This document shows positions 686 to 54,335 of a stretch of DNA of 64,000 bases, in pieces. The DNA lies in the NCBI GenBank assembly GCA_021613535.1, contig CP075495.1, forward strand, positions 10,354,001 through 10,418,000, written 5' to 3'. Source of the stretch: Adineta vaga (lineage: Eukaryota > Animalia > Rotifera). Made by a program: the position numbers and the translations under genes. How positions within the stretch are numbered: position 1 is the first letter of the stretch; the number at the start of each line of letters is the position of its first letter. The notes under the pieces are model-generated. The model was not told where the DNA came from. It saw only the letters and a list, made by a program, of their open reading frames with translations, and ran no database searches.

Positions 686-908
686 AAACTAATTTATTTT
701 CATAAATGAAAGTAAAGTTCAAATGAAAAAACACACATTTTTTTTGTTGTAAAAATTGTTTGATTATATTATTAAACACGATCTTTAGGTCATGACCAAT
801 TCTTAGCACTTTCCTTTTCTTTTACTTATTTTGCGTTCGTTCTTTCTCGTTCTGCCCTTATGAGAATATCAATGTGGGGCGTAGACAAAGAGGGGTAAGC
901 ATCTTGCG

Positions 909-933
909 ATCACGCCATTCTGGTCTGTCGAAA
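909..933 (+). promoter_or_regulatory. SRE-like element ATCACGCCAT (909-918) plus TCTGTCGAAA (924-933) upstream of INSIG
   Basis: ATCACGCCAT resembles the SREBP site consensus ATCACNCCAC/T and lies about 130 nt before the INSIG ATG, just upstream of a TATA-like ATATAAA. Both motifs recur upstream of SMT (53166-53185). Confidence 0.5.
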
Positions 934-1045
934 CTGACTTATCGACTTACATATAAAGTCTACATATGTTTGTAAGTGTTTTTTTACTATCCACTATCAT
1001 CAATCTAGATACAAGGCAATAAGAAATTTTTTCACGAAAATATCA

Positions 1046-1863
1046 ATGACGACAATGCTAGTACGTACATCATCCTCGTCGAATTCAGCACGTTCATTAA
1101 TTTTATTTACATTTGGTTGTACAATGGCTATTGTATTAATGACATTTCAATATGAACATAAATTATTATTATTTAATTCACCTCGTTTGATGCTTACACT
1201 ACCATCTTTGAGTCTCATTTCTATTTGTGGTCTCGGTGCTGGTAAATCAATTAGAACTTAATGAATAACTATCTTTGTTCTTTGTATTTTACTAGCTCTA
1301 GTAGGCTTTATTTATCCGTTACTGACTACATCTATCGATCAAACATCTATGAATGTATATAAAGATGATTCAATACAAAAATCTCAAATATGTAAATCCC
1401 TTGTCATCTTCGTTGGTATAAATCATCTATGTGCTGTAAGTTGATTTCTAACGATGAATTAATGACAAATTATGTTCTTTTTTTCTGCTATTCAGAAAAT
1501 TCCATTTTCAAGTGATCTTCATTTTAGTATAATTATAGTTCTATTATGTATAGCATTTTGGTGGTATTTTGATGGTACGAAAATTGATTTTACTTTTTCA
1601 ATTACAATATCATTGATCTTAACAATAATAACAGAAATTTTATTACGTGCTGGTGCATTACAGTAAGTTAATCGATTTTAGATAACTTTAAATCTTACTA
1701 TTATTTTTGTTTGCATCAATAAAGATATACGAATTCAGACTTTTATTTAAAAACTTGTGTACCTTGTCTAACATTTGCTGGTGCTATTTTAATAATACAA
1801 ATAACGAAATTATTATCTCAATCAACGATTCAAATCGACTCTGAACATGTAAAAACTGAATAA
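1046..1863 (+). CDS. INSIG: Insulin-induced gene (INSIG) sterol-sensing ER membrane protein, 4 exons, divergent
   Basis: The spliced translation contains ICKSLVIFVGINHLCA-KIPFSSDLHFSIIIVLLCIAFWWYFDGT and YTNSDFYLKTCVPCLTFAG, matching INSIG FVGINHASAKLDF..GLWWTFDRS and YTSPDFL..LPCIFFSG. There are three short GT-AG introns and the stop TAA is at 1861-1863. Confidence 0.85.
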
Positions 1864-23506: not shown

Positions 23507-26500
23507 AAAATCTATTGATATTGTCAATCGAATACATTTAAATCAAACAAACTTATCAGGTTTTCTCTTCATTCCATCGGATAAATCGAATTTCTTAATA
23601 AAAGATTATCTATATTTTCTATTATAAGCTAATAAATAGAATTTCTAAGATCTCATTAGTTAACTGATGTTGATATAGACAAATGGCGTGAGTATAGAAA
23701 ACAACTTTGGTTAGTAATGACATTATATTAGTTGAATCGATGTTGGATTAATTACGTTGATAAAACAGCAGGCAAGTGACGGGAAAAAAGAAATCAATCG
23801 AGCAGATGTTGAGTGAATTATAATAAATACAAGGCAACAAATGGCAATACGTTTTGAAACATTTGATAAGAAAATCTTGATCATATGCGTAAGCGTAAAT
23901 TTTAATCAAAAATCATATTCTATTAAGAATAATATTTGTTCTTCGTTCAATTAGTTAATGAAAGTTTAAAAATTACATATAAGCTTTTCTTTTCAATCAT
24001 TTAAATGAAACATGGCAAACTATTGAGGATTCAACTAAACGACTATTAGGTCAAAGAGATTATTCTCTTTATTTCGATTGTCTGTTATGTCTTTATCGCT
24101 TGTTATACATTTTATAACTTCTCGCATTGAATTAATCGAATAAAAGAAGACATGATTAATACAAATAAATAAAACAGATGTGTATATTGATGTTTTGTTT
24201 CATATAATAAATATTAAATCAGATACTTCAACGTACCATTGTTTGAAAATCGCGTAAACGAATCCTATGAGATTGTTTAGATGAAAGATCAAACTGTTGA
24301 GAGCAAAAATATACATCCTTTCGCTTTAGTATTTTCAATCAATTATAGATAATTTATGTGAGCATTTTACATTTGATTCCATTCTTTGTTTCTCGCTTAT
24401 GCTTCTTTTCTTTTTGAATGTTTCATTCTAATTATTCTGTTATGTGCATGAGTATGAAAGAAAAAAAAAACTGAAAGGCAGAAAGAAAGTTTTTTTTTCT
24501 AACCCTCTCTCTCTCTCTCTTTTCTCTCTTTATAATGCTGTCATTCGCTATTTCATTAGAAGCATCGTCGTTGCTGTTATTATTCTGAATAACTAGGAGA
24601 AGAAAAAGACGACGACGGCGGTGATGAGGATGATGTTGATGATGATGATGGCGACACAGAAGCAGAGAAGAAGAAGAAGAAGAAGAAAACGACGAAGGAA
24701 CAGAAGATCCACATAGGCAGCGACCTGTTTGATTATTTTGTCACGTCTCTTTGTCGGTGGTGCACGCTTTGGTGGTCTTACTGCTACTGAGAATGCCCGC
24801 AACATCTCTTTGGTTTTCATAACAAAATTAGTTGCTAATATTACTATTGTGTCTACACTTTCATTCAATGTCTGACAAACAGTTGTACCACGCTCCAATT
24901 ATTTGCAGATCTTTTGTCACGATATCAATGCTTGAATTTTGTGACATAATTCGGTAAGATTCTTCGTAGATAATAATCAATAATTATTTGTTCTTAATAA
25001 TTATATATTTATAGAACAACCGTTCAAATACATCTAAAGCTTATTAACTGTTTAATTTAAAAGTTACTTCAAAACTAATTTGTCAATAATATAGACAGTA
25101 TTTCTTTTTCTGCCTCTCCCTCTCTTTCTCTCTTTCTCTCTCTCTCCCTCTTTTCTTCTCCTATTATCCTTCAATATTGTCGACAAATGTATGCTTCGCT
25201 TTTATCATTGAGAGTTAGCTATATTGTCATCATCGACAATAAACAGTAGTGGAATAGTTGTAATGTGTTCGTATGGTGCACGTCGTTTAATCTGATATAG
25301 TTAACTACTACAAAAAGTCTGTTGTTCATCTTATTTTCTTGTTCTTCGATGCTTGCTTTGCTTTTATGACAACGTGCACACGCAATAAGACACTCGTTTG
25401 TGCACAAGAATATGCTTGCGCGATTTGTTCAGTGTTGTGTGCATTTGGCATCATTCTTTTTTGCTAGAGAAAATGACGAGAATGTGAAAGGAAATGATAG
25501 AACGAGAATAGAGCTGAATTACACACACACATAGTTCTCTTCTCATGTGACTAAAAATATGATCTACATGATGCATTGAATGTCTGTTGCATGTGCACTT
25601 CTCGCATTCATCGACTCATCCCCGCCTTCTATTTACTGTTAAGAAAATATTTGTCTATTAAACATCGACTGACTTTTCTTAAAACGATCAACGTAAAAAT
25701 CTATTCAGAATTGATTTGTTTATCGCACCTTATTATTGCTGTAAATCCTTCCTTTTTTTAATCGTATTTTCTACTTTTTTTTCTTTTCTCATTCTTATAA
25801 GTCGAGCTTTTTCCGCTTTTTTGTTGTTTCTGGTGTAATTAACTGAGTCGAATGAGACGTTTGTCGACTTCTCATCATCAACGTTTTACATCTAATAATT
25901 CACGATAAGTTCCCGTCTTCAAAGCACACTACTAGCCGTATAACAATCAACATCCGCATGCCATATACACGTACACATATACACGTTTTCTTTCTATACA
26001 TTTACTATTAACATTGTATGCGATAAAAACCCTAGAAAATGATAGAAAAGTTACGAAAAAAAAAGAAATTTCCTCTATTATTCTCTCGCTTCCATATACA
26101 GTTGATCCAATCGTCGAGTGATCTATCGTCATATATCTATCTATGTGTATACACATATATACAATGAAGAGAAAGACGCAAAGCAACTAGGTGATAGATA
26201 CATAGAGAACCTTAATAGTATCGATCGATTGCCATCACATTGATTGTCGAATTTCTAGGTTTATTATTGTTATTATCTTTGTTGTTGTTGTTGTTGTTGT
26301 TAGTATTAAAGACAACAGTGTGTTGCTTTAAGCGGTATATCTCATCTGCATATGTATATACATAAACATACAACAGAAAAAAATCGAGAATAGTCAGACT
26401 ATGAGAAAAGAAATTTCAATATCTGATCTTTATATGATATCAATGACACTTTATGGCATCGATTCTGATGCGATTTTCTTGAAGAAATCATAAGAGTACA

Positions 26501-27161
26501 TCGGAGGAAAAAATTAGAATCGGAAAACTTGAAATGAATGATAGAAAGAGAAAGTTTTTGATCGAATTTTTGTTGCCCTAAACACCAGACGATTGATTGT
26601 GATATCGTTTACTTGTTCTTTTCTTTTTCAACTAGTAATATTACCAGAATCGATTGTTGACAATTTCTGACAAACGCTCAATTAATTTTCTCTTCTTTTT
26701 CTTCGAAAGAAAGACATGTCGATTTCTACGTGGTATTATTCGAACTAGTTGACATAGAATCTCTAAGACAGGCTCTCCTATCATTAAATAGAACTCTATT
26801 GACTAGTTTTTCGACAGACAGCTACAGTCGATCGATCATTTCATATTTCTGTTCTGCTTTTTCTGGCATTCTTAACAGTGATAATATGTCAGACCATGCA
26901 ATTCATCTATACGAATGTCTATAAAATATATAGATCTAACTAAAAGACAAAAACTTTCTTAGTTTAAATCTCTCTTTCTATTTTTAGACAAATCTGTATA
27001 TAGTTAATTATTTTATTGAACCATATAGAATGCAACAACAGTCAACATCCGATTGCAAAACTGACTATTGTTATTTACCCTTGTTGTCCTGAAGCGATTG
27101 TTTATCCTATCCTCACACACACACATTTATATAAATATAAATATATATATTTGTAAAAGAT

Positions 27162-51075: not shown

Positions 51076-53165
51076 ACCCAAAGATAAAACAAAATTGTTT
51101 CTTAATCTAAAATAATATCGAAACAAAGATCTATTTTTTGTTTTGATGTTGATTGTAAAAGTCATGTACGAATGAATAATCATTACATTACTAATACACA
51201 TCAATATACGTTTCATATCGATAATAGGTATTTAATACTATACACTACTTTGGAATCGACCTACCGTTCTTCTCTTCAATTAATAAGAAGAAAAAAAAGA
51301 GGAAAAGAGAGAGAAAATAAGAAGAAAAAGAAATGAATTGAGTAACATCATGTTTTGTCAACTAAATAACATGTTTTTCTTTCTAATGACGTGTACGTTT
51401 GATAAGAATTTCTGAGAGCAATGGTATACAAAGGAAATAAAGATCAATATTGATTGCAAAATACATCACCTCAGCATTCTGCTATATTATTTATGAAGGA
51501 AAAAAAGACGTGATTTGTCACTTTTATGCAACAAGTAAACTCGAGTTTACAATATTTTCTTCACAAACTTGAGCAGGTAAAAAAATCATACACCTGGAAT
51601 ATGTTCTCTAAGAGCTGTTGTCATAATCATGCTGGGAACATTTCTATAGATGAGTTTTTAAATCATACACTTTTCATTCGAAGAAGAAAACCTTCATGTA
51701 AGAGTGAGAGACATTCATCGCTTGAGGACTTTTTGCCTCTTTACTAGTTGAAAGACTCTTGCATCAATCTCGCTACAATATAACATAATAAAAAGAAAAG
51801 CAAGTGTTCGCTCATTGTACTTTTACGAAAAAATATTTCTATCGGTGACTTACGGCACAATGGCATTTGTTTGTAGATAGTCAATCAAAAACGGAATATG
51901 TTCAAGAGTTAAAATATGACAATAATACGAAAGACGAAGAAAAAAAAAGAAACGCTTGTCAATCCATTCACATTCATAAATTGAATAAAGCTAAGCGAAA
52001 ACTTTCATCGAAATTACATTTTGAAATAAGATATGAATATGTCGAACATTATTCTTTTCTTTATGTACGTACGTTTACTTGCATCCATTCAGAAGATTAT
52101 GATATATGAGAATACGATGAATACTGATGAACGCAATGAATATTGTTACTTAATAATGTGACAAAACCTACTGATATTGTCCATGATCTCAGTCAACATT
52201 CATTTTATATATCAAATATACGAAAGAACAACTAGAAGGCCAATGCATGATCTTTCAAGTTATATATAGAAGTATGAAGATGACTAAACTTGTTTAGAAA
52301 TAGTTATGTGACGATTTCAAATCTATTGTTTATTGTTACTAGTTGTTCTATAAGCAGATGTTGTCTTTTGCTTTTTTCTTCGAACATTTATACACACAAA
52401 AAAAGGAATCCTTATGTAAGTTTATCGAAATAACATTCACGAAAATGACTAAATTTGAGATAAAATGACAATATATACTTACTTTTTCTTTGGTATTTTT
52501 CAATATTTTTTCGAACTCTTCGTATGCGATAAATGGCTTCATATTTTATTTACCTGTCTATCTTTATGTATCCATCAATCGATTCACTACAGTGATGAAA
52601 TGACAAGAAAGAAAAAAAAAGCCTTCATTCATATTACAAAAGAAAATAGTCTTGAAAAACCACAATCAATCATTTGCATGAAAAAAAAACAAAGTTTCTG
52701 ACACTATTCAAATTAAACAAAAAAAAAGAAATCCACTTACCACTCGCATAAAGTCTTTTATTGATTTTGCAATGTCAAAAAAAGAAAAAGAAATGTCTCC
52801 TTCCTTTATTATCATGCATTCAAAAAAAATTTTCTCTCTTTTTAAATCTAGTTTGCCTATATATCGATATGCGCTATGCGAATCCAAGCCATTAACAGTA
52901 ATTGACGGAAAAATGAACTAATATTATGATACGTTTTTTTTTCCTCTTCTATTTCATTCACCAAGTATATCCTCTCGTCCGATTCATCTCAACCGGAAAA
53001 ATATCACCATTTTGCGTTCATTACGTTGTCATGCATTCCCTTCCTTTACCTGTGCGTTCCGCATAACTCAGTCAACTGTTGTTCTCTAGCGATTCGAGCG
53101 TCACCTAACGAATCAGTAGTTTCGACTAAGTAAATAAACTAATGGTGTATATATAGGTTGATATA

Positions 53166-53185
53166 TCTGTCGAAAGTCACGCCAT
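53166..53185 (+). promoter_or_regulatory. TCTGTCGAAA plus SRE-like GTCACGCCAT upstream of SMT
   Basis: These are the same two motifs as in the INSIG promoter, adjacent and in swapped order, ending about 36 nt before the ATG. A weaker SRE-like GTCACCTAAC lies at 53100. Confidence 0.5.
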
Positions 53186-53221
53186 AATCAACTCATAAAT
53201 AATCTTCTTTTCTTAAGTACA

Positions 53222-54335
53222 ATGACGGAAAAAACGTTAATAAAACGTTCAAATGAAGCTGTTAAAAAAGAAGTTTCAACATACAATGAACTCTATCAAG
53301 ATTCAACATCGATCGATAAACGAAAGGATCAATATCAAACGTTAGTTACAAATTATTATAGTTTAGCAACAGATTTTTATGAATATGGTTGGGGTCAAAG
53401 TTTTCATTTTGCAAATCGATTTCGTGGTGAAACTTTAGAAGAATCTATTCAACGACATGAATCTTATTTGGGATTAAGAATGCAACTTAAACCAGGCGAC
53501 AAAGTACTTGATATTGGTTGTGGTGTTGGTGGTCCATTGAGACGTATTGCAAATTTAAGTGGTGCACATATTACTGGTGTAACTATTAGTCAATATCAAA
53601 TTCAACGAGCAAAAACTATTGGTATGAAAAGATCATGTTTTATTTTCTCTCTTCGCACATGAAACCATATATTATAGGTGTACCAGCTAATTGTCAATTT
53701 ATTCAAGGCGATTTTATGCAATTACCATTTGAAGATAATACTTTCGATCATGTTTACGTTATTGAAGCTGCATGTCATGCACCAGAAAAGGTAAACTAAT
53801 GCATGTTTTTCTATAAACAAATATTAAATACATTTTCTTTTCTTTATCATTCTATTAGGCTAAATGTTTTGCTGAAGTCTTCCGAGTATTAAAACCAGGC
53901 GGTTCATTTGTTGGTTATGATTGGTGTGTAACTGATAAATATGATAAACAAAATCGTGATCATCTCGAAATTAAACGTTTAATTGAAGAAGGTGATGGAT
54001 TGCCTGATTTGAAATCAACAGATGAATTAGTTACTGATTTAAAATCAGTCGGTTTTACTGTTGAAGAAAGTCGAATTATTCCTGAAGGTGATATCCCATG
54101 GTATCAACCATTCGTAGGTGGTGATTCATTTTTTTCATTAGCAAGTTTTCGTACATCAAATATTGGTCGTTGGTTTACACGTAATATGGTTTGGCTTATG
54201 GAAAGAACAAAATTTGCTGCTCAAGGCTCAATGGGTACACTTGAAATTCTTGAAAAAGCAGCACTCGGTTTAACACGTGGTGGTCAAACTGGCATTTTTA
54301 CACCTTACTTCTTTTTTATCGGTCGTAAATCTTAA
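53222..54335 (+). CDS. SMT1: Sterol 24-C-methyltransferase (ERG6/SMT-like), 329 aa, 3 exons
   Basis: Motifs [23 protein letters not shown]-binding [34 protein letters not shown] and IPWY. Introns at 53622-53677 and 53791-53858. Confidence 0.95.

Follow-up and report, generated by a model that had tools for sequence, protein, structure and literature searches.

A predicted SREBP-type sterol regulon, including C24-sterol methyltransferase genes, in a rotifer

How SREBP regulates sterol genes is established for vertebrates, flies, worms and fungi. In the mammalian SREBP-2/SCAP/INSIG system, the sterol regulatory element SRE-1 (ATCACCCCAC) lies in the promoters of cholesterol-synthesis genes, INSIG1 and SREBF2. 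Drosophila and C. elegans are sterol auxotrophs in which SREBP controls fatty-acid synthesis. Fungal SREBPs respond mainly to oxygen by way of sterol supply, and several of them operate without a working INSIG brake. The fungal factor SrbA has its motif in its own promoter, and erg11 is among the fungal genes that bear the motif; the human element (TCACNCCAC), the A. fumigatus SrbA motif (A/G)TCA(T/C/G)(C/G)CCAC(T/C) and the S. pombe Sre1 consensus are quoted in the same source (PMC4223079). Genes for C24-sterol methyltransferases (SMTs) are present in Adineta, Rotaria and Didymodactylos, and the biomarker literature is divided over the role of these enzymes in animals (PMC10692144). For rotifers, our search turned up no publication on regulation by SREBP. 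The present analysis predicts an SREBP regulon in a lineage that is new for it, for which we infer SREBP binding and a sterol response from sequence.

The window analysed here is the whole stretch of 64,000 nt at positions 10354001-10418000 of contig 2, in a bdelloid-rotifer-like assembly of 100.8 Mb in six contigs. It is AT-rich (30% G+C) and its introns are short. A sequence-only reading had called an INSIG gene and an SMT gene in this window and had proposed that they share a promoter module of two motifs, named A and B below:

909..918, + strand: motif A, ATCACGCCAT, SRE-like, 136 nt before the INSIG ATG
924..933, + strand: motif B, TCTGTCGAAA, in the INSIG promoter, 5 nt 3' of A and 122 nt before the ATG
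1046..1863, + strand: INSIG gene, four exons at about 1046-1241, 1296-1435, 1496-1662 and 1725-1863
53166..53175, + strand: motif B, TCTGTCGAAA, in the SMT promoter or leader, directly before A and 56 nt before the ATG
53176..53185, + strand: motif A, GTCACGCCAT, SRE-like, 46 nt before the SMT ATG (53222)
53222..54335, + strand: C24-sterol methyltransferase (SMT) gene, three exons at 53222-53621, 53678-53790 and 53859-about 54335

Gene identity was checked exon by exon with Pfam and PDB, and both gene calls held. The INSIG gene, whose ATG lies at 1046 and whose exon limits are approximate since they were taken from the sequence and the ORF frames, matches Pfam INSIG at 3.7e-7 on exon 3. The SMT gene matches Sterol_MT_C at 9.6e-21, and its exon 1 is of the CMAS/methyltransferase type. 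Both SMT introns are GT..AG introns that are spliced out in RNA-type contigs, indicating that the gene is expressed and that its model is right. The genome holds two INSIG genes in total, the second on contig 5, and four SMT genes, on contigs 2, 5, 3 and 6. On contig 5 the second INSIG lies 58 kb from the second SMT, and we conclude that contigs 2 and 5 carry paralogous blocks.

The coordinates and strand given earlier for the motifs proved exact at both genes. Each motif occurs three times in the window, against 0.21 copies expected for A and 0.32 for B, and none of 100 shuffles reached three. The third copies, at 23683-23691 (A) and 26809-26818 (B), are unpaired and both on the minus strand; that of A sits between the 3' ends of two genes and is probably a chance match. 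Within the window the degenerate form RTCACSCCAY was found only at the INSIG and SMT promoters, and it gave no match in 128 kb of unrelated loci that had been fetched for other purposes and served as controls. Genome-wide counts were 384 for TCACGCCAT and 450 for TCTGTCGAAA. On the same strand and within 30 nt of each other, A and B occur at only three places in 100.8 Mb, where an estimate under independent placement gives about 0.05 such pairs. These places are the window INSIG, the window SMT and the contig 5 INSIG promoter (9130271), so the impression from the window that the pair is rare was correct, all three sites belonging to INSIG or SMT genes. Order and spacing differ between the two kinds of gene: at INSIG, A is followed after 5 nt by B, and at SMT B comes before A, 0-1 nt apart.

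Motif A has the properties of an SRE, being of the TCACNCCAC type, non-palindromic and built on the E-box half-site TCAC. Its copies in sterol-gene promoters all read (A/G)TCAC(G/C)CCAT, from which we took (A/G)TCAC(G/C)CCAT(T) as a working consensus; the terminal T is permitted by the Sre1 and HepG2-type consensus. A is present in five of the six INSIG and SMT promoters, though their flanks are otherwise unalignable. The contig 5 SMT carries ATCACGCCATT twice, at -158 and -135 from the ATG, and the contig 3 SMT carries ATCACCCCATT at -57; the region upstream of the contig 6 SMT contains no clean A site. Global alignment of the window and contig 5 SMT promoters showed nothing shared beyond A. 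The middle base is G in most copies and C in the contig 3 SMT, and ATCAC and CCAT are invariant.

We then determined where A lies with respect to other sterol genes. The 11-mer ATCACGCCATT has 59 genomic copies, compared with 8 for the reversed control. This excess was rejected as proof of regulation, because much of it is coding, in a family with the peptide WRD(E/D)C, or lies in repeats. All 53 copies outside the known sterol genes were fetched and inspected, and 37 of them fell inside open frames of at least 60 codons (25 of those in frames of at least 100). Among the non-coding copies, nine of 22 adjoin sterol genes. They are located at both INSIGs, at the contig 5 SMT (two copies), at the only oxidosqualene-cyclase-type gene (OSC, about 200 nt before the ATG), at SREBP (about 100 nt before the probable ATG), at CYP51 (about 190 nt before the ATG; the best PDB matches are sterol 14-alpha-demethylases), at an NPC2-like ML-domain gene (about 95 nt before the ATG) and beside a KshA/Neverland-like Rieske oxygenase. 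This last enzyme is nearest to 3-ketosteroid 9-alpha-hydroxylase (KshA), and the KshA-type Rieske group includes the cholesterol 7-desaturase Neverland. When INSIG and SMT were excluded, 5 of 18 non-coding copies still adjoined sterol genes, for which a rough binomial estimate is 1e-8, assuming that 0.4% of sites are expected beside such genes.

Complete genome lists of ATCACGCCATV and GTCACGCCAT yielded additional A-type sites before four genes: an ERG4_ERG24 gene (630 nt upstream), a gene with an FA_hydroxylase domain (590 nt), one HMGCS (contig 5, 770 nt) and HMGCR, where the site is 1.2 kb from the first recognised ORF. Among about 50 genes tested, three A sites lay at most 800 nt upstream, compared with about 0.07 expected. 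The reach to other sterol genes that the sequence-only reading had anticipated was thus found at HMGCR, one HMGCS, OSC, CYP51 and one ERG4/24 reductase. SRE-type sites are therefore enriched at sterol genes, though the element is not universal: no exact A site was found near either SQS gene, the contig 2 HMGCS, seven of the eight ERG4/24 matches, most FA_hydroxylase matches, the four NPC1 genes of the genome or the 13 FA_desaturase matches, nor within 5 kb of SCAP. The canonical squalene epoxidase family PF08491 has no match in the genome. The sites at OSC and SREBP are oriented away from the gene. Three features of the HMGCR locus were also recorded: its upstream ORF (330 codons, minus strand, contig 5), which probably encodes the membrane part, is without a Pfam match, the gene was not picked up in the search for sterol-sensing domains, and the intergenic region before the upstream ORF is unusually long, about 1.4 kb.

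The genome also encodes a candidate factor to bind such an element. The back-translated pattern HNxIE(K/R)RYR has one single genomic match, on contig 5. The SREBP exon reads SHNAIEKRYRSSINERILELKEIV, and its only PDB match is SREBP-1a (1am9, 6e-8). Its basic region and helix 1 agree with human SREBP-1a at 19 of 24 positions, the run IEKRYRSSIN being identical, and a tyrosine replaces the conserved basic-region arginine. This tyrosine is the SRE-specificity residue that lets SREBPs read the non-palindromic SRE (PMC3945117). The next exon encodes a hydrophobic membrane span with an NP motif and then a second span, so that the gene combines a tyrosine-bearing bHLH-Zip with two membrane spans, as an SREBP does; its C-terminal domain gave no Pfam or PDB match. 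Both partner proteins are present: SCAP is encoded, with a sterol-sensing domain that matches 7etw/6m49 at 1.6e-43, and INSIG on contigs 2 and 5. For the site-2 protease, a weak sub-threshold Pfam match was obtained.

A looks like this animal's sterol regulatory element, marking its sterol genes, including plant-type enzymes that are unusual in animals. Taking these observations together, we are fairly confident that A is an SRE, most likely bound by the contig 5 SREBP and with the sterol targets given above, and that B is a separate constrained element, probably for a second factor. The SREBP-type regulon that had been proposed from the INSIG and C24-SMT promoters is retained as a prediction, with SREBP, SCAP and INSIG encoded and A present at other sterol genes.

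As in mammals, the rotifer element has the shape TCACNCCAY, the SREBP basic region contains the tyrosine, SCAP and INSIG are present, and the predicted targets include HMGCR, HMGCS, the cyclase, CYP51, a sterol reductase, INSIG and SREBP. Unlike the mammalian element, A ends in T instead of C and mostly has G at its middle position. No evident NF-Y or Sp1 site accompanies it; the one neighbour seen repeatedly is the unrelated TCTGTCGAAA, at two genes (INSIG and SMT). Among the predicted rotifer targets are enzymes that mammals lack, namely C24-SMTs, a cyclase of non-animal type and a Rieske oxygenase. In other respects the arrangement resembles that of fungi: the end of the consensus fits A(C/T), as in Sre1, the motif is found at ergosterol-type genes, CYP51/erg11 among them, and in the promoter of the factor itself, as with Sre1 and SrbA, and C24-methylated sterols are made in fungi. 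In contrast to fungi, the two INSIGs are the best-conserved predicted targets. With Drosophila HLH106 and C. elegans SBP-1, the factor has in common that it is an invertebrate SREBP with the same type of DNA-binding domain; the sterol-gene targets, together with the lack of an exact site near the 13 FA_desaturase matches, make it more like vertebrate SREBP-2.

The evidence on motif B comes mainly from the INSIG promoter, in which a single block is conserved:

906..942, + strand: conserved block consisting of A, the 5-nt spacer, B followed by CTGACTTA; outside it the two INSIG promoters cannot be aligned

The contig 2 and contig 5 INSIG promoters share 35 identical columns in this block, from CGATCACGCC to CTGACTTA. 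One metagenome scan provided an AT-rich contig, L113, with an orthologous INSIG and the same upstream neighbour. Compared with the window, L113 showed 82% identity in exon 1, 56% in the upstream DNA, 55% in intron 1 and 35/37 in the block 906-942. The unit of A, spacer and B is identical at 25/25 positions among the window INSIG, its contig 5 paralog and L113, and conservation of the pair in an orthologous promoter is thus complete at INSIG. Because this 25-nt unit is identical while the flanking DNA is only about 56% identical, B looks functional.

Outside these promoters the association dissolves. B does not accompany A at any other sterol gene that was examined, the contig 5 SMT among them, and was found at 3 of about 15 A sites. 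No second word is shared within 90 nt of A in the 11 sterol promoters counted, so that no composite of an SRE with a CCAAT or GC-box partner emerged; in the OSC promoter a loose look-alike of B, GTCAGTCGATT, directly follows A. The proposal that a two-motif module defines the regulon therefore had to be given up. As for B being the site of a co-activator, its strong constraint at INSIG speaks for this part of the proposal and its sequence is neither an NF-Y nor an Sp1 site; given that constraint, the site of an accessory factor remains plausible. We favour the reading of B as a local accessory site for a putative second factor; the main rival reading is that it is a core-promoter or leader feature.

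According to that rival, which we consider somewhat doubtful, B is no co-activator site: the INSIG block would be a core-promoter, start-site or 5' leader sequence, the SMT copy would be a coincidence or a start-site feature, and there would be no module. The absence of B from all other A-bearing sterol promoters and from the SMT paralog agrees with this, as do the unlike order and spacing at INSIG and SMT. At SMT, a TATATATA stretch precedes B by about 10-20 nt. Exact RNA-type contigs start at 53099, 53169 and 53188; the end of a contig is not equivalent to a transcript start. The first contig begins upstream of the A/B pair, which at SMT may be located at or just after the transcription start and thus be transcribed. 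Conservation in L113 also runs on past B toward the ATG, and part of the genome-wide excess of B could be compositional. Against a long leader, the conserved run between the INSIG copies stops 9 nt after B, which argues that the INSIG block is not of that kind. Also against the rival are an estimated chance of about 1e-4 per promoter for the exact 10-mer beside A and the relaxed composites (TCACNCCAY plus TGTCGAAA within 30 nt), of which there are 16, compared with 0 for the reversed control. Two tight composites that resemble those of INSIG and SMT were seen elsewhere, TCACGCCATCGTTGTCGAAA at contig 5 12655833-12655852 (-) and TGTCGAAATCACACCAT at contig 1 9495758-9495774 (-).

Further observations were made in the same promoters. 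The region upstream of SMT is shared with a divergent gene on the minus strand whose ATG lies near 52543, and the 680-nt interval 52543-53222 between the two genes may be a bidirectional promoter. A second conserved block lies farther from the INSIG ATG:

829..840, + strand: conserved promoter block TTTGCGTTCGTT, kept in L113

The related words TTTTGCGTTC (53011-53020) and TTTTTCGTTC occur upstream of the window SMT and of the contig 5 SMT, respectively, and together with TTTGCGTTCGTT they may represent a third shared element. At 870-886 there is TCAATGTGGGGCGTAGA, which contains the GC-box-like run GGGGCGT and lies 25-30 nt ahead of the SRE of INSIG; this run is kept in L113 and missing from the contig 5 INSIG promoter.

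Returning to motif A, CGCCAT and, on the opposite strand, TGGCGTGA are cores recognized by other factor classes, and both are contained in the 9-mer. A could hence be a real sterol element with a different binder, namely a YY1/Pho-type zinc finger, a bHLH-PAS dimer (through TNGCGTGA on the other strand) or another bHLH-Zip protein reading TCAC, and the genome has about 58 HLH matches from which such a factor might come. We regard this as improbable. The YY1 and bHLH-PAS readings were judged unlikely because the middle base varies between G and C, a change that would destroy the GCGTG and GCCAT cores and that an SRE tolerates. The 19/24 agreement with SREBP-1a argues in the same direction, and so does the site in the SREBP gene's own promoter, as described for SrbA (PMC4223079). 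That the shared motifs are functionless chance matches is very unlikely, indeed close to negligible: both are short, with hundreds of genomic copies each that are often coding, but the pair is confined to three promoters, is perfectly kept in the paralog and in the relative amid flanks of 56% identity, and the nine of 22 non-coding ATCACGCCATT copies adjoin sterol genes.

With A as an SRE read by the contig 5 SREBP, the circuit would operate as follows. When membrane sterol is low, SCAP would escort SREBP from the ER, by analogy with mammals and fission yeast, and the released bHLH part of SREBP would activate the genes that carry motif A. For synthesis, the predicted targets are HMGCR, one HMGCS, OSC, CYP51, one ERG4/24 reductase, one FA_hydroxylase-type gene and three of the four SMTs; for sterol handling, they are the NPC2-like and the Rieske/Neverland-like genes. 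SREBP acting at its own promoter would provide positive feedback and both INSIGs negative feedback. B would bind the putative second factor, which would modify SREBP output at the INSIGs and at the window SMT.

A broader interpretation, which we put forward tentatively as one possibility, is that the animal SREBP-SCAP-INSIG circuit has been redirected to a sterol pathway that is largely non-animal, each gene gaining the host SRE, and that a lineage-specific 25-nt composite of the SRE and TCTGTCGAAA, with its partner, sets INSIG and one SMT apart. The non-animal pathway genes meant here are an intronless OSC of plant/protist type, an obtusifoliol-type CYP51 and several C24-methyltransferases. 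The OSC encodes 725 aa, matches TIGR03463 with 710 bits and is of non-animal type. It shares the locus contig 1 10784614-10788676 (-) with a following same-strand, intronless gene for a 554-aa flavin epoxidase-like protein (PDB MonCI, Lsd18/LasC); a second copy of TCACGCCAT is located 3' of the epoxidase gene, about 120 nt beyond its stop codon. If these genes are under the animal's own sterol feedback, the SMTs and the non-animal cyclase would be working parts of the rotifer sterol supply and not idle acquisitions, and the genome would offer a clean case of unusual or acquired genes wired into a host regulon by a 10-nt element. The 35-nt conserved INSIG block would be a defined bait for the putative SREBP partner.

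A paralogous copy of the OSC upstream region was noticed on contig 3 (17379697-17381007), where about 60 nt around ATCACGCCATT can be aligned. It lies just past the 3' end of an ORF resembling a nuclear-receptor LBD, an arrangement of neighbours that is also present at the OSC locus. A second cyclase was not found in the genome, and the contig 3 copy may therefore be the remnant of a lost one.

Finally, several sequence families carry A-like words in other settings. Long ORFs on contigs 1, 2, 4 and 5 (about 300 codons in the 1.3 kb fetched) contain ATCACGCCATT in antisense, where it encodes a conserved (K/Q)WRD(E/D/N)C, and the family looks expanded; the genome-wide count of the motif is inflated as a result. 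Three near-identical long ORFs with the motif, of up to 406 codons in the piece inspected (contig 1 12424152, contig 4 14873981 and contig 5 1701729), are probably a repeat or a mobile element. The word ATCACCCCAT has 118 copies, compared with 8 for the reversed control, and on contig 3 (19875372-19918193, six copies) and contig 5 (10225815-10243453, three copies) it recurs on one strand at regular steps of 5.5-16 kb, which suggests tandemly repeated genes or elements.
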